64,000 nt of DNA, taken from assembly GCA_047495785.1 (NCBI GenBank), contig JBLDXI010000016.1, forward strand, positions 434,001-498,000, read 5' to 3'. The notes beneath the pieces were generated by a model. It worked only from the letters and a program-made list of their open reading frames with translations, was not told the DNA's origin and ran no database searches. Of this stretch, positions 30,521 to 44,023 are shown piece by piece. A program made the translations under genes and the position numbers. Positions within the stretch are counted from its first letter, which is position 1. Each line of letters starts with the position of its first letter. Source of the stretch: Lepidodermella squamata. Its lineage: Eukaryota; Animalia; Gastrotricha.

Positions 30521-32934
30521 CTACTGATACGTGTTTATGACTTTTTGTATCCAGTGTAGATAAGAGCTGACCCTGGTGTAGACCCCGGGCGAGCCTCGTT
30601 TCGCGCAACCCTTGCCCCAAGATACGACGCCATGCAGCTCCCAGCGTCCGTTGATGAAACAGGCCAGAGGACCGCCGTTATCACCCCGGCAGTTATCGAC
30701 CCCGCCCCGCTCATAGCCGGCACATATCATGCTTTCAGTCACGTGCTGGCTGTAATAGGAGTTCATCGCTCTACATTCGTCGTTTTTGATCAGCGGCACT
30801 TGGGCTTCATTCAAAAATCCCAACGTATCTATAGGAAGAGATCAATTTCAAAATGTCTGGATTTCTAGGTCAAAAAATTTTCACCTGTGTTGTTTGTGTC
30901 ACCCCAGCCAATGATATAGCAAAGTTCCCGTCCATTTAGCGTGGTCGATGGCGGGCAGATAGGAGCAGCCAATTTCCCGAACGGTATCTTCTGCTCCACC
31001 TTGACCAAGGCTATGTCGAATTCTTTTGAATTTCGGCCCTTGCCGTACCTGTAATGAGTAAGGATCATTTCAACGGATGGCTTCAGAATCATAGACCGGT
31101 AGTCCCAGCCAATGTTGTTGTCGAGGTCTGATGTGTGTTTTCCAATGCTGACTTCCCAGCCTGAAATGTGTTTTCGCTCGTTTTTGAAGCAATGAGCCGC
31201 AGTTAGCAGCCATCCTGTGAAAAATAGTAGCATAACTTCAAAATTCGAATTATTTATTTAATTAACATATACTTAATTTGAAAAAATTCTGAGAAAATTA
31301 CTGAGAAAAAGCAATTACTTACTCTCACTCAAGATTGTTGCAGCACAAATCGGGTAGCCGAAGAATGAGAGCATAGCGATCCAGGGCCACGATCCTGGCC
31401 GTGCGATATTTCCGCCAACTACCCGCTTCTTTCTCGATAGTAGCGTAATGGTCATATTTGCTGGCATCGTACTCTGCTGCTCATTCGGCGGCGAATGGGT
31501 TGACATTTCTTCCTGCTGAGCAACTGCTTTCACTAAGTGATTCGGCCGAAACATGGGCGGGAGAGGGAAAACCGGGTTAGGATGGGGCGGTTTCCGAAAT
31601 GGAGGCATCATATTAGGAGGATGAGGTGTCATTTTTGGCGGTGGCGGGGGCGGGAAGGTTGGCGGAAAAGAGGGCGGAGCTTGTTGATACATTGACTGCC
31701 CATCTTCTGGTGAGAAAAGCGACTTGCCACACGCCTGCATATCAGCATGGAAAACTTCAGATGCCATCACGGCGTAGTACTCAAAGTCGAACCCAGCGGC
31801 GATTTCAGTCGAAGTCGACCGGAACAACAGATCCATTCGATCCGTGGCGAAAGCCTTCTGCCACAGGTCGATTTGCGGCAATTTTATCTCGCAATAACTA
31901 GAGACCTTAGTCATATTCTCCTGCTGATCGACAAATGACACGTCTAGAACATTGGCTTGACACGGAGCTGCGGATTTGTCAATCTCAAAGCGAGGAATTC
32001 GGTACTTAAAGTAACTCAACGATTGACCGGCTTGTAGTTTGGGTTCAAGAATCCAGTGGCACCAAACTGAAGAGTTTCCAGGCTGGGCGAAACGAATTTT
32101 CCCGGAATGACCGGTTAAAACGAGACCATGATCGGAAAAACACGCCTGTTCGTAACGCTCCGACATGTTGTTAGCTTCATAAGAGGTCGCGACTAAATCA
32201 GTCTCGGAGTAAGTCTCATCCTGAAGAACAATCCGCTTTAAAGTCCTGTCCCCTTCTGGAGCGGCGACTTGCAAATCAGATTGCGTGAAAACCCCAGTCA
32301 AGGCCTCGTAAAATATGCGGAAACCTCGAAATTGCTGCTGCAGTTTAGCATGGATCAGAATATGAGTGCCTGGATTCAGTGGAATGTTGAACCCTGAGAC
32401 CCATCCCTTCCCGCAAAATTCAGCGATAACTTGGCGGGAGTGGTCGTCATTGACCAGGTAAAAGCGTAGGAAATTCCAACCGCAGTGATAGCCAGGGTTG
32501 AGAAACTTCTCGTTCGTCTCGTCATAGTACGGCTCGCGAGGGATGTCGAGGCCCTCAAAATTGAACGCCACCAGCTCGATCTCATCGTTAATTTTCGAAT
32601 TCGGCTTTTGCGTCCTTTCCGGCGCAATAATTTTCCACTTACAAATCACAGGTAACGGATAGTCGGACGTAGCATTTTCCATTGGCCACGATTTTCGAAA
32701 TTCTTCATGTGATGTCAAAAAACCACGTGGCGAGTCGGCCAAGTTGAGCACTGTAGGCTCGGTTGAGTTAATTTGGGTGCAGTAAGTCTCGTAGGCCCTT
32801 GAACGCTGCTCCTCTCGAAGTAGGAACATTCGCATTCTAGCAGCAGCTGCAGGGGACATTTCCGTGTGACCTCCATTTTCAAAGCTATGAGAAAATCCGA
32901 TAATGGCTACGGCTAAGAAAAATCTTAGGATCAT
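30521..32934 (-). CDS. Secreted CUB-CUB-Pro-rich-trypsin (S1A) protease homologue with catalytic Ser->Asn
   Basis: Signal [17 protein letters not shown]; two CUB-like domains; RKKR|VVGG activation site; TAAHC and DIAL present, but GDNGGP instead of GDSGGP. Exons 32934-31323, 31214-30885, 30828-30521. Confidence 0.9.
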
Positions 32935-33099
32935 CTTGTTTTCGGCTACAAATGTGAAATTGTGGTTTATTAATGCAACAAGGGACGCTACGACTCGCCT
33001 ATTGTCTATTGTTGCAGCTTCCATTCATTTGACTCAGTTTCATTGAAAATTCACATTTTCATTCATATCGATAACAATGGGCGCAAACCGCAATTAAGG

Positions 33100-33936: not shown

Positions 33937-35163
33937 ATGGCGCCACGTGTCGCCGCTTTAATCATGTTTATCGGCTTATGCGGCGCCCAGCCTCTGATCA
34001 ACGTACCATCGATGCCTGTCCCGCCCTCACCGACTATGTTCACCTACAAGGGTAACCCCCAATTCGGCACAACGGTCGAAAAGACCGAGACTTCAACGGT
34101 TAGACAAGCGAAAATGGACGATACGCAATACAGGGTGCAGAAACTTCAGAAGGCTTCTACAACTCAGAGCCCCCAGGAGGTCTATCTGAGCGAGTTGATC
34201 AAACGACAACTCCAGAATGCTGAGAATGGGAAAATTCCTAACCCCGATGAAGTAGCTGGTATGGCGTCCCAGGGAGCAGCTGCTGTTCTTGCGATGCGGG
34301 AGCCCTCTGCTAGCTCCGAGGTGCCGTCGAGAGTTGGATATCCCCGTGGAATGCAGGGTATGTATGGATCTCAGGCTGGCTACAACCCTATGAGTAGCTA
34401 TCTGAGGAATGGCGCTAGTCAAGGCCCGTCTTACCGTAACGGTTACGAGAGTCCGTCGAGCTACATGTACCCTAATAGGTTCATGTCGCCCTACGCTGGG
34501 GCACAGCAGGGCTACGGCCAAGCTAGCCACCACTACAGCCCTCACGAGACAGCCAATGCTGTGGAAAGGGGTATGCCTCAACAACTCCCTGGAGCTGGGA
34601 TGAATCCTTGGTCCAGGTATGGCAGCGCCTCGGCTCACCAACGTGGTCCGGCTATGATGGGCTCTGGATCACCCTACCATCAGCACCAGCCGCACCACAT
34701 GAACCCCTCTCATCAGCAGCAAAATATGTGGATGAAACCGCCAACAGAGCAGACTCAGACCTACATGCGCGCCCCGCCAGTCCCTCAACAACAACCCCCG
34801 GTCGGTAATGCTGGTCAGGTTTCGTTTGTCCGAGACCGGGATCGTGAGTATCTCGAGCGGTTGGAGAGTGAGCCGACCCTCCAGGCCCTGAATGGTGCTA
34901 GCTTGTTCGAGATCGAAAATGGCGCCCAACCGCAACCCAGCCCTCAGAACTACGCAACAGCTTTCGGCGCGCACCCGTACACCCAGGGTGGTCGTTACGC
35001 TGGTATGTTGGCAAACGGCGAGCCGGAAAATTCTGGTCTAGCTGGTATGACTGGTCTGGGCTACGCTGGTCTGGCCGGCAGTTACTTCGCCTCGCCCCAA
35101 CAAGCCGAAATGCAACAGCCACAGCAACAACCGCCTCAACAACCTAACCCAGGCTATTGGTGA
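33937..35163 (+). CDS. Secreted low-complexity Q/P/G/S/Y/M-rich protein (408 aa)
   Basis: Signal MAPRVAALIMFIGLCGA; single coding exon; contains YLSELIKRQL; AATAAA at about 35347. Confidence 0.85.
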   Translation: MAPRVAALIMFIGLCGAQPLINVPSMPVPPSPTMFTYKGNPQFGTTVEKTETSTVRQAKMDDTQYRVQKLQKASTTQSPQEVYLSELIKRQLQNAENGKIPNPDEVAGMASQGAAAVLAMREPSASSEVPSRVGYPRGMQGMYGSQAGYNPMSSYLRNGASQGPSYRNGYESPSSYMYPNRFMSPYAGAQQGYGQASHHYSPHETANAVERGMPQQLPGAGMNPWSRYGSASAHQRGPAMMGSGSPYHQHQPHHMNPSHQQQNMWMKPPTEQTQTYMRAPPVPQQQPPVGNAGQVSFVRDRDREYLERLESEPTLQALNGASLFEIENGAQPQPSPQNYATAFGAHPYTQGGRYAGMLANGEPENSGLAGMTGLGYAGLAGSYFASPQQAEMQQPQQQPPQQPNPGYW

Positions 35164-36239
35164 AACATCAAAAAGTTACCTGATAATGATATGACTTAAT
35201 GATTTTCAAAGAAATCTGTGTGATGAAATCATATGTTTACCTCTAACGCAAATCCAGCGCGATGATGACTCGCGATAAAATATTTTTGAAATTTACTCGA
35301 TATTTTCAGGTATATTCCATTCACTCTTTTTCTGATAAGCCTCAAAATAAAACGCTTATGTGAGCATCATCATTGTCTCTTTACCGCCAAAGAAATCAAG
35401 GGAAAAGCTGATGAGTATTAGAGAGTCCGGAAATCTGACCTAATTCCACAAAGCCACGGCACAGCAATGGCGCATTGTAAAATGACCTATTTATGGACAA
35501 TTATTTTGACGAACTTTGGTGGGAAATATAAAGGAGTTCATTCAGTGCTTAATCAAAAGTCTTGATTCTGATAAGATTGGTACAAATCCGAAAGGGAAGC
35601 TAAGAACTTTAACTAATGCTGTATCGTGGCGTCTGAAAGCTTGTCCTCGTTTGCTTAATGGCTTAATTGCTGTAGCCGGACGATAGCATTAGCCTGTACC
35701 ATAACAAATACTGCTCTGCACTAAGAATAGCCGGACAATGGCCGGCGTGGCAAAAAATGAACCGCTACTGTTTGTTGTAAGCAAATGCCAAAAAGCCTGA
35801 CCCGGCCGGACACTCGAGCTAACGGCCGGCTCGTCGAGGTGACCGGTAACAGCCACTCGACGGCGTTCAAGGGCCTATCAATTGCTGGGCAATGGACCCA
35901 ATTTACGTGTTAAGCAAATTGTAACATTGACTACCGTATCCACCTTAATAAATCGATCGGCTGATAACTAACATAAATCACCACGATTTTCACTCAAATA
36001 AATTTGTGCCCAGATAATTTTGACCTACTTCACGGAGACATGTTTCCAATGTGTTGTAGTCACTCATTTTTGCGATGAAATTGTTAGTTTCTCAGGGGAA
36101 ATTTTGCGGCCCAGAAGGGTGTGGCAATGATTAGTTGCCATGATCAGTGTCTAATGGCCCGGTCCCGCCTTTATAAGCCAGGCGTAAACAAGTAAGGCGT
36201 GACAAACAAGTCGAATTTACTTCCTATTGCAATAAAAAA

Positions 36240-38029
36240 ATGTTACAAACCTGCGAATTGAGAGTTTTGATCATTTCATCGGCATTTTTTGCTATATCGG
36301 CCCTACCGCAGGGACCGAGGGGTCCAGGGAAGTCTACTACACCAGTTTTGACAACAGTCCCAACTACGCCTGATTCTAAAGCGAATGCTACAACCCCAGC
36401 AGCGCATCGAGTCGATAATTATCCGAATAGCCACAGGACGCATCAAATTATTCATAGCCGGTTTTTCATTCCGATTAGGCCAAATGGCCCGTTACCACCT
36501 CCACCTCCTCCCCCACCACCGCCACCAGTGATCTATCAAGCTATCGATGTTGGGACAATAGTAGATACAGCCTCGAATGAGATCGAAGTTTACGACTCTA
36601 ACGACACAAATCGATTCAACCAAACTCAACATGTTATTATCGATGCGGAGACCATCCTAAATTCTACCCATATTGGGAAGAGCGTGAAACAGTTAGGATT
36701 AGGTCTCAGTGGGCTGGGAGGTCTAGGTTTGTCTGGCCTAGGAGGCGGCAGTAGCCTCGGTAGCCTCGGGGGATATAGCAGTGGTGGTTTGAGTGGGCTT
36801 AGTCTTGGAGGGGGAAGTTATGGGGGACTAGGGGGATACAGTCTCGGTGGTGGAAGCAGCTATGGAGGCTTGGGAGGATACAGCCTGGGAAGCGGTAGTA
36901 GCTATGGTGGATTAAGTGGATTGAGTGGACTAGGTGGATACAGTTTGGGAGGTAGCAGTCTTGGAGGCTTGGGTGGATATAGTTTGGGCAGTGGGAGCAC
37001 CCTCGGAGGCCTAGGTGGATATAGCTTGGGTGGAGGTAGCAGCTATGGAGGATTGGGAGGCTACGGCGGCTCATCACTAGCTGGAGTAAATTCCTACTCA
37101 TCCCAGCCGTATTACAGGTTAGTTATTAAGTATTCTTAAACACAACCGTTTCGCACTTTCGATTTCCTAGCAGTGGTACGACCCTAGTCTCGCCCGTCTA
37201 CACGCAAGTCAGCAGCAGTAGCAGGTAAACATTGGCGCCAAAATCGTAACAAAACCAAAGTGTTATTCTTTGAAAGATCCAGGGTGAATAGCTCGGCAAA
37301 AAATCTATCCAAGATCCGTTATCGATACCCGACCTACCGTTCCTTCGTGAGACCCGCTCCCCTTTACTACCTTTTCAGGTTCAGACCCTAAAATAACCTG
37401 TACCTGCTTTCTAACAATCATCAGACTCTATAAGCAATCAGACATAGCAATATTTGTTCTCTACAGCGGTGGATTGAGTCCTAGTCTATACAGCGGTGGC
37501 TTTGGCGGAGGCTATGGCGGCGGTTATGGCGGTGGATACGGCGGCGGATACGGCGAGTAAGTTTACCCAACCTCCTAACCCCATATATGAGTGCACTTTA
37601 AGATCATGCGACCCGTAACGATCGGGTGGTATAAAACCCCATTTTCGAGGCTTTTACCTCAGCCCTCATATAACTATATTATGCCCTTTTCAGTCCATTA
37701 GCTTCAATCGTACAAGCTCAACTCGGTTTCGGGAGCGGAGGCTACGGTAGCTCGTGAGTAACTCATTGATTACCTTGACTGGCCCTGAGCGTTCATTTGT
37801 TTCAGCGGCTACGGCGGCTACGGCGGAGGCTATAGCAGCGGCTATGGCGGGAGCTACAGTGGAGGAAGCCCAACAATTTACCTTCAGGGGTTAGTTATCA
37901 TTTTCATTCTTGATCCCGTCTGATTTATTGTATTTTCTTGTCAGATTTGGTGGTGGCAGCGGTTTCGGAGGTTCTGGAGGAGGTTTCAGCAACGCTTTCG
38001 GCGGTGGCGGATTATGGCAGCGTAGATAG
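36240..38029 (+). CDS. Secreted Gly/Ser/Tyr-rich structural protein (~416 aa, 6 exons)
   Basis: Signal peptide, poly-Pro, GGYSLGGGSSYGGL repeats. Exons 36240-37117, 37171-37224, 37467-37556, 37694-37753 (PLASIVQAQLGFG), 37806-37889, 37945-38029 splice in frame. TTATAA at about 36171. Confidence 0.85.
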
Positions 38030-39403
38030 GGATAATTAATTAATCTCGTCCGACTTTTTCGCATCCTCGATCGTTCGTGTTCAACACTGCAAAAAACTAA
38101 TTTCCTATATCAGGTTTCAAGCGTCGCATAATGCCAAATTAAGCACCTGTTGTATGAAAAGAATAAAAGGATCAATGAGAGGCTTAATTGTTCAGTGTGT
38201 CATCTTAAAGTCATCGCAACCGGGTTCATCATTTTTTTACATGCACCCGCCTGTCACTGGCTCGAGATCTGCGCACCCTGAGTGGCGAAAGGTTACGTAT
38301 GTCGACGACCCCGCGACTACGTCATGCCATGTTGACTCTGCGCAAGTCAACCGCGTTCAAGCCCACGCACCCGCTGCTGCAGCTGCAGTTTCTTCTTCTT
38401 CTTCGGTCCTTGGATACGTTACGGCGATGCGGCGACAAGATACACGCGGCTATGAAAGAGACGCGCACACTTAACTCGCAGGGTAAACACAGCGAAACAT
38501 CGGCATGTGCAAACACAACGTTTTTTGCTATGCATTAAGGCGGCGGCGTGTTTGCCTTAATGTTGATGATGATAATATAAATAAAGCTTTTTTATGCATG
38601 CGCCACTTGAGCACCTGTGCCAAAATTGGCGCCGAGAATTTTCGACGGGAAGCTGCGCCGCCGCGGCGCCGTGTGAGGAAGCGGAAATTCAAGTCCAAGA
38701 CGCGTCGGGTGCGAAGAGCTTGACGCCAGCTTTTTGCTCTTCACCGCGAATCGGTTGTTTATTAGTGCCTCTCGACGCGAGTAGTTGGCACCTGGTAGTG
38801 CCTATAGTTTTTTTGTCTTGACTATTTTTTTCTACCAACTTGTCATTAGCAGCGGTAATATTGGCGTTGGCTCTCGAGATTTTTTCATACTTGAATCCTC
38901 GACATGAAGCATAAAAGATATTATAACAAAAAAACCGTCGGTTAAAATACCTCGTTTTTTGCCCTGTCACATTGACGCCGACGCGCAATCAACCGACAGC
39001 CGTAGCCACCCGAAAAATCCATACTACCCTAACAACTGAACCCAAGTCTAGCTCACCCTCTACCCTGACCCTAGTCATCCTTGAGTCACCCTACCTTCGC
39101 TAAGTTAGCCTGTTAAATTGGCCCTGGATGCGAAATTTAAGGAGGAATGGGAATTTTAGGCTCGGGGCTCATACGGCACTCAAGTGGCTGGAACAAAGAG
39201 ACTTAGACTATATAAGGAGCCAGAAATCCTGTGCGCAACCACAACGCTAAAAGTTTAAGCTAGAGCGCTATAGCTGAAGGCAAGTCTCCTGCCTAATATT
39301 CATTTATCTCAAATCTCAAATCTCGCTAGATCTTTCTAAGGTTTGCTTGCTTTTCCTATATAGAGACTTAAGTTCTACTTTCGATTCAACGCTCCAGGTC
39401 AAA

Positions 39404-39706
39404 ATGCAGTTCGCCTCGATTGTCTGCTTGCTCTTCGTCGCCGTCGCCGTCGCGAGCGCGGCCCCGTCTGGACTCCAGCAACTCCTACAGCAACAGCCTG
39501 CCGCCCAGCCCGCTGCCCAACCCGCGCAGGTTGAGGGTGAGGCCAATGGACTTAAGACCAAGCACTGGGTTGCCTCTGCCTATCCCTACGGCTACTACCC
39601 ATACGCCTACGACCCGTACTACGCCAACCAGGCCTACCTCGGATCGGTCGTCAAGGCCCAGCTCGGCTACTACCCGTACTACGGCTACTACCCCTACTAC
39701 TACTAA
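39404..39706 (+). CDS. Secreted Tyr-rich small structural protein A (100 aa)
   Basis: Signal, Gln/Pro/Ala spacer, KTK|HW, YPYGYY repeats, QAYLGSVVKAQLG. TATATAA at about 39209; GC-AG 5'UTR intron about 39280-39397. Confidence 0.9.
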   Translation: MQFASIVCLLFVAVAVASAAPSGLQQLLQQQPAAQPAAQPAQVEGEANGLKTKHWVASAYPYGYYPYAYDPYYANQAYLGSVVKAQLGYYPYYGYYPYYY

Positions 39707-40349
39707 ACAAACGATAGCGTAGCCCTATAATATAATCTCAACGCGATTTCATCTCACAACTCAACAATCAAAACGCGGACTTATATTCGTATAAGCGAAC
39801 ATACTGCCTATACTATGATGTGGATGTAAAATTGATGTATTATATATGTTGACGGTTTTGCTTCACTTTTTTCGTTGTATCTCTGGAAATCTTTCGTGGA
39901 GAATTGAACGACAGCGAACAACAACTTGCTTCTCTGATGGATGATATACCCCGTTCTCTCTCTATTCTTTTACTACACTATGCTAGTTTTTTTCTCGACG
40001 CTAATCTCTGAATGGAGGCTGAATGAATAAAGGAGATTGAGACTGGTGATTCATTTCGCGGTTTCTTTACCCTCTACTCAGACCCTAGCCACCTTATAAC
40101 CACCATAATCTTGTTTAATTGGGCTGTTAAATTGGCCCGGAATAAGAAATTGAAGGGGGAATAGGGGGAATAGAAATTTTTTGGGCTGGGGCCAATCAAG
40201 TGCGGCTGGAACTAAGAGAGCAAACGTTTAGGCCCCTGGTTTATATCCATATATCTCAAATCTCAAATCTCGATAGATCTTTCAAAAGTTTGTTTTTCTC
40301 ACTATATAGAGATTTAAGTTCTATTTTCGATTCAACGCTCCACGTCAAA

Positions 40350-40655
40350 ATGCAGTTCGCCTCAATTGTCTGCTTGCTCCTCGTCGCCGTCGCTGTCGCG
40401 AGCGCGGCCCCATCTGGACTCCAGCAACTGCTCCAGCAACAACCGTCCGCCCAGCCCGCCGCTCTGACTGAGCAGGTTGCTGAGGGTGAGACTGGAAACA
40501 AGCCCAAGCACTGGGTTGGCGCTGCCTACCCCTACGGCTACCAGCCATACGCCTACAACCCGTACTACCCCAACCAGGCCTACCTCGGATCGGTCGTCAA
40601 GGCTCAGCTCGGCTACTACCCGTACTACGGCTACGGCTACCCCTACTACTACTAA
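40350..40655 (+). CDS. Secreted Tyr-rich small structural protein B (101 aa), tandem duplicate of A
   Basis: Very similar protein (KPK|HW, QAYLGSVVKAQLG) in a ~1-kb tandem duplication; lacks A's TATA and exon 1, and the acceptor is CAC instead of CAG. Confidence 0.8.
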   Translation: MQFASIVCLLLVAVAVASAAPSGLQQLLQQQPSAQPAALTEQVAEGETGNKPKHWVGAAYPYGYQPYAYNPYYPNQAYLGSVVKAQLGYYPYYGYGYPYYY

Positions 40656-43624
40656 ACCAGCGATAGTCTAGCCCTATTATATAATCTCACAGCGATTTCA
40701 TATCTCACAACTCAATTATCAACAAATGGACTTATATTCGTATAAGCGAACACACTGCCTAATATGAAGTGGATGTAAAATTGATGTATTATATATGTTT
40801 TCGATCGACGGTTTTGCTTCACTTTTGTTTTCTTTTTTTTCGTTGTATCTCTGGAAATCTTTCGTGGAGACTTGAACGACGGACGACAGCGAACAACAAC
40901 TTCTCTGATGGATGATATACCCCGTTCTCTCTCTATTCTTTTACTGCACTAGTTTTTTTCTCGAGGCTAATCTCTGAACGGAGGCTGAATGAATAAAGAG
41001 ATTGCTACTGGTGAATCATTTCGCGGTTTTTAATTAGAAAAGCGGTATTTTAAGACATTTGGTTGAGGAACTAAGAAACAGCAGTCAATCTAGAAAATGT
41101 CGGAGAAGCACTTCGTGTCACCCAGCAGCCATGATCTCAAACTTGGGTAATGCACTCTTGGAGGGCTGAAAAAAGCACCGGGATGCGATAGAGAATGTTC
41201 CAGGGTAGGAGTATACATTTTCATATCTTTTTTGCACGCCGACCGCAAATGCACTTCCTTTTTGATGCATCGCCACCACTGCCGCGTCAGGATTTCGAGG
41301 GTAGCGCCGTAACGTAGTCCTTAATGGATAGGCCGAGTATACGCTGCCTGTTATACATAGGTATCCCAGTTATTTAGGGCTGCTGGGTAGCAGCAAGGAA
41401 ATTCAGAAACAAAAATCTGGCATACATATCCCGAATCCAGCACTCTATCATCAGCCTTACCTTTTTATGACTTTTTCTAAAACGCGCCGGTAATTTTGGT
41501 GAATGAGATGAAGATGAAACTAAAAAGTTGATAAATATAAGGCATTTAATTTGAACGGTGTAGACTGGCAGGCTATCGTTCTATGGTGTCTTTTGGTCTG
41601 TTTTCTTGGCAATATTTCGGAAGTTCGCCTTGGAAGTGCCTTTCCAATTTCTGGCATGCAGCATTCATTGCAATACTCTATTTCGAATTTCGATTGGTCA
41701 AGTTCAACGCCCCAGAACTTACCGCCAAGGCCATCAGGTATTCTGATAAATAAATTTAAAAATGGCGAATTCTTCACACTCAAGTTTGTTGGCTGAAAAT
41801 CCTCAAACATGTGTCTGAGTAAAACTGCAATCATTCATCAGTCACGGTTGTTTGTCTAGTAAGTAGCTTTATTACGTCGAGAAAACATGCATTCAAAAAA
41901 GCCACAGTTACTAGTAGTTGGTCTAATACGGACCCAGTCCTTTTCATAACGGTACCGATTTGACCATCAATTTTTAAGGCAGTATTTGAAGACGAAAGAA
42001 AAAAGTCAGGACTAAGAACATAACATATTTTGCGTTAAGCCGGACTCGATCCGAGCCAGAAGATTTAGTCCGGCTTAAGGAAAGTCCGCTTTATTGCCGG
42101 ACTGTCCCGGTTAAAAAACAGTGCATTCCTTTACAAATTATTCAAGAATATAAACGCTATAAAGTAATAAGCTATTTGGGTGTGTAAAAAGTTAGATTAT
42201 CGAGCAGGAATTAAGGTTTTGCATCAAGAGCGAACTGTTATTTTTCAAGACTGCGATCATTTTTGCTATGGAAGCTACCTAAAAACGGCGTGGAGAGTGG
42301 AGAGGCTGTTTATGCGCTCTAGATGAAAACTTTGCTCTAAGCAACCATTTGCATTTAAAATTTAAAACGTTTCTCCGCGGCACGAGCCAAACAAATTGGT
42401 CCAGCTAAGCGCAAGTACCGCTTATCGCAAAACTCTACTGTATTCAATGCAGATGGGAAGCGCAGTTGTGAAAGCCGCCATTTTCAGATCAAGCTGGTGG
42501 CTCAAAGCTCTTAACTATTCACTCCTAAAATGCCCACGACTGTTGCCTCCTCTAGCGTTAACGAAATTGGTTCCCGAAGGTCATATTAACTGGGTGCTAA
42601 CTAGTATCATTCACGATACTCAAGAAACCCTGTAATTTTAGGCGGTGAGTTTCCAACCGATTGAGGAATTAATGCTTAGTATCTGGAGAGGCGTAAAAGC
42701 TAATAATCGCGTCAGGGTGAAAATGCTGATCTGAAATCAGCCTAAAAGAAATAAATGATCCGCGAATTCTAAAAAACGCGAAAAAAATGAATTGGGAATC
42801 TGCACTCCGGCTGAGCTTTGAACTGGATATTCTCAATTCTCAATTCATCCGACGCTGCAAGTACAAGACACTTTCGTCACTTAGTTCGCAGAATGTGAAG
42901 ATGATGACGAGGGCACATCCGAAACCAGGGCAATTCACTTTTCCCCGCATGCACTGCTTAAATCTTTCCAGAAGAAATCGCCGCAATGTAAAAAAGGAAA
43001 TGGACACATTGTAAAGCGCACTATGAAACACCTTTATGTGGCAAGAACTGAGGAGCAGTCCAGCAGCCCTGAAGTGGTCAGTGTCCATTTAGGCATGCAA
43101 CCGTGACTCCGCGGTGTGATAATTGACACGTACGTCGCAGGGGCAGCCCAAGTACTCTTGAGACGCAGCCCTTTAACGCATGTAACGTAAGACGAAAAAA
43201 CCGGCCAAGCTAACTCAGAAATGGCTACTTAATCGGCTACTACCGTATTGTCCCGAATAAAGGCCATTCCTCAAAAAAAGGAATTTTTCAACTTTAAAAT
43301 TACTAAAAATTGCCAAATCTAATTAGATGCTATCATACCATGAAAAGCGGAATCCTAATCTTCGCAACTTGGATTTTTGGATTGATAAGACTAAGAGAGT
43401 TCAGGATGTGTCACGGTCCAATTAACGGATCTACCATGGTCAGTTTGAGCAAACATGCACCCTGGCACTATAAATTGGCGCAAAAATCGGTTCAAAAAAC
43501 AGTTTGCTTCACTATTTGTTTTTGCAACAACTCTGATATCTTCCTGCTGCTGAGGTAAGTTTGCCAGCCGTTATTGCCTTGCCCAGTGTTTCCAAGATTA
43601 AAGTTCTATAGGTCGACACATAAA

Positions 43625-44023
43625 ATGAAGGCGGTTATCGGCATTGCTTTCCTGTTCTCTGTTGCGTTCGCAGCTCCGGTTGATAAGGTCGAAAAATCCG
43701 TGGTTACCCCACCAACTCCAGCGCCTACAGCACCGCTGGCCCCGGAGAACAAGCAGGTTGTCGTTGATAAGAAGAACGAAATCAAGCCCAAGTCATGGGT
43801 TGCCGGTTCGTGGCGCGCCTACATCCCCGACCCGCCAATCATCGTCCAGCCGCCCGTTGTCATTCAGGAGCCAATCTTCCCGATCATGCCCGACCTGCCT
43901 CTGTACCCTGAGCCGTTCTACCCGGCCTACCCAGCCTACCAGTACGAACAGGCCTATCTCGGCGCTCTCGTCAGGGCTCAACTCGGCTTCGGCTGGGCGA
44001 ATGGCTATGGACCGTGGTGGTAA
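43625..44023 (+). CDS. Secreted Pro/Tyr-rich small structural protein C (132 aa)
   Basis: Signal MKAVIGIAFLFSVAFA, KPK|SW, YPAYPAY, QAYLGALVRAQLG. TATAAA at 43469, 5'UTR intron 43556-43611, AATAAA at about 44124. Confidence 0.9.
   Translation: MKAVIGIAFLFSVAFAAPVDKVEKSVVTPPTPAPTAPLAPENKQVVVDKKNEIKPKSWVAGSWRAYIPDPPIIVQPPVVIQEPIFPIMPDLPLYPEPFYPAYPAYQYEQAYLGALVRAQLGFGWANGYGPWW

Follow-up and report, generated by a model that had tools for sequence, protein, structure and literature searches.

Several families of low-complexity structural proteins are defined by a short motif, among them the shematrins and KRMPs of molluscs, the CPLC and CPG proteins of insects, chorion proteins and the suckerins of squid. 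Flatworms are the sister phylum of gastrotrichs, the animals that concern us here. In the trematode eggshell precursors P14, P19 and P48, Tyr is often followed by Gly, and these proteins are tanned by tyrosinase to the quinone of dihydroxyphenylalanine (DOPA), which binds Lys (PMC2758302). In this work we analyze a gene cluster of the gastrotrich Lepidodermella squamata, located in a stretch of 64,000 nucleotides (hereafter the window; assembly GCA_047495785.1, contig JBLDXI010000016.1, positions 434,001 to 498,000 of the forward strand; positions below are those of the window). On the plus strand, between 33.9 and 44.0 kb, it holds five genes whose products have a hydrophobic signal-like N-terminus according to the translations of their open reading frames (ORFs): gene 1 (starting at 33937), gene 2 (36240), gene 3 (39404), gene 4 (40350) and gene 5 (43625). 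A preliminary description of the window had already pointed to the shared strand, the signal peptides and the richness in Tyr, Gly, Pro or Gln, and all five products do combine a signal-like N-terminus with a mature part rich in Tyr, Gly, Pro, Gln and Ala. Genes 2 to 5 make up a family of four, which shares a motif confined to this cluster within the 121-Mb genome.

The shared motif and the extent of the family

The core of the motif, L-[GA]-x-[VIL]-V-x-A-Q-L-G, is present at positions 37698, 39638, 40584 and 43958, always on the plus strand. In its extended form, (Q-A-Y)-L-[GA]-x-[VIL]-V-x-A-Q-L-G-[YF], it lies near the C-terminal tail of the products of genes 2 to 5, and in each of them the core is followed by [YF]-[YG] and by a tail rich in aromatic residues and Gly. 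The copies previously described, namely YLGSVVKAQLG in genes 3 and 4, YLGALVRAQLG in gene 5 and PLASIVQAQLG in gene 2, were all found in place. A degenerate DNA pattern of the core gave 4 matches in the window, against 0.00 in 100 dinucleotide shuffles, and four of the five occurrences of AQLG in the six frames of the 64 kb correspond to the cluster copies. In the whole genome the core pattern was matched 12 times and its reversed control 4 times; beyond the cluster, the core pattern has 8 matches, which fall in unrelated or closed frames lacking a Tyr/Gly-rich context. A profile of 15 columns was built from the four copies, a check proposed in the preliminary description, and in the genome it matched only the four cluster loci, with 27-36 bits. 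When all ORFs of the window were searched with the filters off (hmmsearch --max), the four copies scored 27-33 bits and everything else ≤7; the copy in exon 4 of gene 2 reached 27.5 bits.

The motif had initially been attributed to five genes, including a weaker copy in gene 1 (YLSELIKRQLQ, at 34186). This attribution holds for genes 2 to 5, but not for gene 1, whose segment gave no score against the four-copy profile and was recovered neither in the genome nor in the window. The candidacy of gene 1 as a fifth member was rejected: its segment is hydrophilic and strongly amphipathic (hydrophobic moment, muH, 0.47; mean hydrophobicity -0.06), in contrast to the moderate hydrophobicity and weak amphipathicity of the four true copies, and it is located near the N-terminus and not beside an aromatic tail. 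In our view, gene 1 is an adjacent gene whose product has a similar composition, and not a member of the family.

No relatives of these proteins were identified in any of the searches done. For the five proteins, no Pfam family passed its gathering score, the best hits being noise (E 0.04-0.26), and gene 1, exon 1 of gene 2 and gene 3 gave no relatives when used as queries in word searches. A profile of genes 3 to 5 run with HMMER against 1.84 billion protein representatives returned a single match, limited to the signal peptide; the metagenome scan with the profile gave no relatives, and the strict motif pattern was found there at 71 loci, all of them in bacterial-type contexts without Tyr/Gly-rich surroundings. 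The nearest leads from the ESM Atlas were extracellular proteins of low complexity (kappa-casein, a cuticular protein, an extensin-like protein and enamelin) and reached 0.75-0.79, below the level that counts. These results agree with the earlier remark that no named domain was recognized in the motif, since Pfam offered nothing beyond such noise at E≤1, and the possibility, also raised at that stage, that it belongs to a described cuticle or eggshell family found no match in the Pfam, word or profile searches. Exact look-ups of the five proteins in the protein collection, with either start, were likewise without a match; however, the single-exon actin and tubulin ORFs of this same genome, used as a control, are also absent from that collection, where this animal thus seems not to be represented. 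The lack of relatives is therefore weak evidence, gastrotrichs being apparently barely sampled, and it tells us little on other gastrotrichs and nothing on transcription. Within the genome no further paralogues were detected: genes 1, 2 (exon 1) and 5 each match only themselves, and gene 3 matches genes 3, 4 and 5.

Gene relationships and exon structure of gene 2

It had been proposed that the motif is embedded in otherwise unrelated proteins. This is the case of gene 2, which shares only the motif exon with the others, but genes 3, 4 and 5 align from end to end. These three have in common the signal peptide, a spacer rich in Gln/Ala/Pro or Pro/Thr/Ala, a Tyr/Pro-rich part and an aromatic tail, and two elements are invariant among them, K-x-K-[HS]-W-V and Q-A-Y-L-G-x-x-V-x-A-Q-L-G. 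In gene 3 the order is signal peptide, Gln/Ala/Pro spacer, K-T-K-H-W-V, Tyr/Pro-rich part, motif and Tyr-rich tail; in gene 5, the signal peptide is followed by K-P-K-S-W-V, a Pro/Ile/Val-rich insert of 31 amino acids carried by the Tyr/Pro-rich part, the motif and the tail FGWANGYGPWW. Genes 3 and 4 show 83% amino acid identity, with a synonymous divergence (dS) of 0.24 and a ratio of nonsynonymous to synonymous divergence (dN/dS) of 0.29. This ratio, along with the unchanged motif and tail, indicates that both genes are under purifying selection.

The exons of gene 2 were translated and searched individually. The resulting model has six exons, adding up to 416 codons plus the stop, and five introns, all of them in phase 2, with junction codons for S, S, D, S and G, in this order (GAT and TCC around exon 4). 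In exon 1, the run of 12 Pro residues is followed by a unique region of around 60 amino acids with N-x-S/T sites and then by 42-nucleotide tandem repeats of the GGLGGYSLG type. The proposal that PLASIVQAQLG is encoded by its own 60-nucleotide exon is borne out by the AG/GT borders and by its fit in this model, where its reading frame is fixed by the neighbouring exons and the GYG-rich frame continues on both sides. Because all introns are in phase 2, exons 2 to 5 are symmetric and may act as cassettes that can be skipped in frame, an arrangement that permits alternative splicing or exon shuffling. Over the codons for A-Q-L-G-F-G (GCTCAACTCGGYTTCGG), genes 2 and 5 are identical in 17 of 18 nucleotides and use the same codons, among them CAA, which gene 5 otherwise employs for only a minority of its Gln residues. 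Because of this shared stretch, the motif of gene 2 most likely has common descent with that of genes 3 to 5, by exon acquisition or conversion, and is not a product of convergence; capture of the exon would be compatible with this identity and with the symmetric phase of the motif exon. The coordinates of all features are collected in Table 1.

Table 1. Coordinates of the genes, exons and repeat units of the cluster in the window
Feature	Positions	Strand	Description	Basis
Gene 1	33937..35163	+	single exon, 408 amino acids, predicted secreted, rich in Q/P/G/A/S/Y/M; outside the motif family	ORF
Gene 2, exon 1	36240..37117	+	signal peptide, Thr/Pro-rich stretch with Pro12 run; donor GT at 37118	
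Gene 2, exon 2 (inferred)	37171..37224	+	54 nucleotides, phase 2-2, Ser/Thr/Val-rich	AG/GT borders, frame continuity
Gene 2, exon 3	37467..37556	+	90 nucleotides, phase 2-2, GGYG repeats (12-nucleotide repeat)	AG/GT borders, open frame
Gene 2, exon 4 (motif exon)	37694..37753	+	60 nucleotides, phase 2-2, reads PLASIVQAQLGFGSGGYGS	AG/GT borders
Gene 2, exon 5	37806..37889	+	84 nucleotides, phase 2-2, GYGG repeats	AG/GT borders, frame
Gene 2, exon 6	37945..38029	+	GGF-rich tail ending in LWQRR; stop TAG at 38027-38029	sequence, frame
Gene 3	39404..39706	+	single-exon precursor of 100 amino acids; motif at 39635-39667	ORF
Gene 4	40350..40655	+	single coding exon, 101 amino acids, tandem duplicate of gene 3; motif at 40581-40613	
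Gene 5	43625..44023	+	single coding exon, diverged paralogue of 132 amino acids; motif at 43955-43987	
Two tandem units, ~950-970 bp	39055-40064 and 40069-41029 (39055..41029)	+	gene 3 and gene 4, each with promoter and 3' flank	

The two tandem units are recognized by the direct repeat families D1 and D6-D14, with identities of 73-98%, and no Rfam family was matched between positions 33000 and 45000. As for the surroundings, gene 1 is a single-copy orphan, its product ends in GYW and it contains two short charged, non-repetitive islands. Its divergent neighbour (30521-33024, minus strand) encodes a secreted protein with a CUB domain, a Pro-rich linker and a trypsin-like domain (Pfam CUB and Trypsin), which retains the His of TAAHC and the Asp of DIAL and reads GDNGGP in place of GDSGGP. 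Since the active-site Ser is replaced by Asn, this protein is probably a pseudoprotease.

Protein properties and expression hints

Signal peptides were read from the translations as a hydrophobic N-terminus ending in a small-x-small site. The mature proteins are free of Cys and near neutral (isoelectric points of 5.3-7.3; 6.8 for genes 3 and 4, 5.3 for gene 5), Lys plus Arg do not exceed Asp plus Glu in genes 3 to 5, and aromatic residues amount to up to 23% in genes 3 and 4, whose mature products contain 3 Lys each. The mature products of genes 3 to 5 comprise 81-116 amino acids and lack dibasic processing sites. AlphaFold2 models obtained from the three-sequence alignment were of low confidence, with mean predicted local distance difference test scores (pLDDT) of 48.5 and 53.7. 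In both, a helix is predicted over the motif (residues 71-86 of gene 3 and 104-119 of gene 5; pLDDT ~50-59). The model of gene 3 also shows a helix in the signal peptide and a weak one of 5 residues (24-28); everything else is predicted as disordered. A helix or a beta-zipper is a possible structure for the motif.

With respect to expression, TATA-like boxes are present upstream of the ATG in genes 2, 3 and 5 (TATATAG at 39357-39363 in gene 3 and TATAAAT at 43469-43475 in gene 5), and upstream of gene 1 there is just an ATATAG-like site, not flagged by the TATA scan. In gene 5, a putative 57-nucleotide intron of the 5' untranslated region (43555-43611) is located between the TATAAAT box and the ATG at 43625. 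Taking the actin and tubulin ORFs of the genome as codon reference (G+C content at third codon positions, GC3, of 0.62; TAC 0.75), genes 3 and 4 go beyond it in the same direction (GC3 0.80, TAC 0.97, AAG 1.00 and GTC 0.75), which suggests very high expression of these two genes, and the codon usage of gene 5 is close to that of actin and tubulin.

Possible function of the cluster

From the sequences we infer secretion, a function in a material and a role in assembly for the products of genes 2 to 5. With a moderate degree of confidence, we read these genes as a lineage-restricted cluster for secreted, disordered matrix proteins of an extracellular material, with the motif as their shared assembly element. 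The proteins would be matrix components of the gastrotrich cuticle or scales, of the egg envelope or of an adhesive; the motif would be the one ordered "sticker" by which chains of different composition dock onto each other, and their many tyrosines would supply stacking and possibly dityrosine links made by a peroxidase. The earlier idea of a co-regulated building kit for an extracellular structure fits with the composition, the clustering on the same strand and the family-specific motif, but for four members and not five. A more elaborate version, tentative and on balance unlikely, would see the motif as a dedicated co-assembly module (a nucleator of helices or beta-zippers) that locks different disordered chains into one composite, spread by capture of the symmetric 60-nucleotide exon, with the four genes as the first known components of a gastrotrich-specific structure such as cuticular scales or egg envelope.

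Several observations weigh against the interpretation as assembling matrix proteins. To be small, secreted, without relatives and encoded in tandem is also typical of peptides with immune or signalling roles, and no relatives were found that would show conservation beyond the L. squamata genome. The motif had been described as helical, and a helix is indeed predicted in two models, but with low confidence, and as a helix it would not be clearly amphipathic (muH 0.14-0.23). Gene 2 shows no codon bias (GC3 0.44, TAC 0.53), so that genes 2 to 5 may not be expressed alike, and a k-mer comparison of the four upstream regions revealed no convincing shared element; given this sharp difference in codon bias and the lack of a common upstream element, one uniform expression programme for the genes is mildly doubtful. 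Lastly, no tyrosinase (PF00264) was found in the genome at E≤1e-5 in an exon-by-exon search, which does not prove its absence in an assembly that is ~80% complete according to BUSCO.

This last result, and the composition of the motif, bear on the cross-linking chemistry that had been suggested. The genome has at least three loci for animal haem peroxidases (C29:183032-184924, C55:481985-483584 and C29:1746813-1748648), two of them in open frames of more than 1200 amino acids. Given the presence of these peroxidases and the failure to detect tyrosinase, dityrosine appears a more plausible covalent route than DOPA, which is the weakened one of the two fates initially proposed for Tyr. A Gln/Lys tag for transglutaminase had also been put forward; the Gln of the motif is invariant but the Lys position varies (K, K, R, Q), and because Lys is not conserved the motif offers no constant Lys donor.

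An alternative to the assembly of matrix proteins is that the motif works as a recognition tag, for sorting into one type of secretory granule, for chaperone binding, or as a docking or cleavage site for a shared processing or cross-linking enzyme, for instance a transglutaminase that modifies the invariant Gln. Such a tag would look like what is seen here, a brief conserved linear stretch with invariant A-Q-L-G in otherwise freely evolving disorder; the second conserved element of genes 3 to 5, K-x-K-[HS]-W-V, resembles a recognition or processing site, and a secreted CUB/trypsin-like gene adjoins the cluster. However, that protease homologue has Asn in the place of the catalytic Ser and is thus not a processing enzyme, the Lys of the motif is not conserved and no partner enzyme or receptor was identified, all of which makes us consider a recognition tag rather unlikely, although it and an assembly element are not mutually exclusive. 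We find it quite unlikely that genes 3 to 5 encode Gly/Tyr-rich secreted bioactive or defence peptides, comparable to the NLP and CNC peptides of nematodes or to glycine-rich antimicrobial peptides of arthropods, with the motif as their functional or membrane-active core: the small size of the mature products, their signal peptide, the tandem duplication and the orphan status would be in accordance with such peptides, as would a lead from the ESM Atlas to a nematode-specific peptide family (0.76, below the level that counts), but the mature proteins are neutral to acidic instead of cationic, dibasic processing sites are missing in genes 3 to 5, the dN/dS of 0.29 reveals no diversifying selection, and a 416-amino-acid repeat protein such as that of gene 2 does not fit a peptide model.

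It could also be argued that exon 37694-37753 is not used and that the family consists of only three paralogues, genes 3 to 5, beside unrelated low-complexity genes. Exons 2 to 5 of gene 2 are all in phase 2-2 and each could be skipped in frame, as this would demand; against it, the borders of the exon are the canonical AG/GT and the GYG-rich frame runs without interruption on both sides, its score of 27.5 bits compares with ≤7 elsewhere in the window and places it among only four profile matches in 121 Mb, gene 3 follows on the same strand 1.6 kb downstream, and 17 of 18 nucleotides are the same as in gene 5. An unused exon therefore seems highly improbable to us, and a chance match of the motif at this exon is very unlikely.

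The search of the literature yielded no molecular report on the composition of the cuticle, scales, egg envelope or adhesive of gastrotrichs, and a small, well-defined family without relatives, marked by one conserved segment, offers a convenient way to approach these extracellular structures. If the motif were a portable assembly tag moved between genes on a symmetric exon, it would illustrate how disordered proteins can give rise to new extracellular materials; if not, the cluster would be one more lineage-specific family of low-complexity secreted proteins, as found in most animal genomes.

Comparison with known systems

Two types of cuticle protein, the arthropod cuticular proteins and the nematode cuticle collagens, can be set apart from this family. 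The arthropod R&R domain (PF00379, Chitin_bind_4) is absent from the five proteins and had no match in the genome, in a search without positive control; the same applies to the genome search for the nematode Col_cuticle_N domain (PF01484), also without positive control, and the translations show no Gly-X-Y periodicity. In nematodes, the Gly/Tyr-rich antimicrobial peptides of the NLP and CNC families are small, secreted, cationic and encoded in tandem clusters. The L. squamata proteins resemble them as small secreted Gly/Tyr-rich products of tandemly clustered genes, but the nematode peptides are much shorter and cationic, whereas here the proteins are neutral or acidic, their front half is rich in Pro, Ala and Gln and the conserved segment is hydrophobic. 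A functional analogy, and nothing else, can be drawn with the prion-like domain of TDP-43, where self-association is driven by a short conserved, partly helical hydrophobic segment: in both cases such a segment sits within a disordered region rich in aromatic residues and Gly. TDP-43 is however intracellular, binds RNA and is unrelated in sequence, and the analogy implies no family assignment.

The trematode precursors P14, P19 and P48 offer a closer parallel, in that secreted Tyr-rich low-complexity proteins of several unrelated families contribute to one hardened extracellular structure, and Tyr followed by Gly is also present in gene 2 and in the tails of genes 3 to 5. On the other hand, neither the word searches, three in all, nor the profile run against 1.84 billion proteins revealed sequence similarity to them, and tanning in trematodes relies on tyrosinase, which was not detected here, where Lys is scarce. 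To our knowledge, no motif of the AQLG type has been described for P14, P19 or P48. Like the shematrins and KRMPs, CPLC and CPG proteins, chorion proteins and suckerins, the present proteins combine a signal peptide with Gly/Tyr-rich repeats, are lineage-restricted and encoded in tandem clusters, and have one short conserved stretch as their sole family signature, and the Gly/Tyr modules of suckerins and shematrins resemble the GGLGGYSLG repeats of gene 2 in composition. The difference lies in homology, compared here via Pfam only, where no match was obtained at E≤1, and in the organism, which belongs to neither the molluscs nor the arthropods; we know of no match of the AQLG motif to any of these families.

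Judged from sequence features, the family belongs to none of the systems compared, every defining feature tested having failed. By analogy of working principle, its closest counterparts would be the trematode eggshell precursors, along with the motif-defined low-complexity families of molluscs, insects and squid, and genes 2 to 5 apparently represent a new, lineage-restricted family of a familiar kind.

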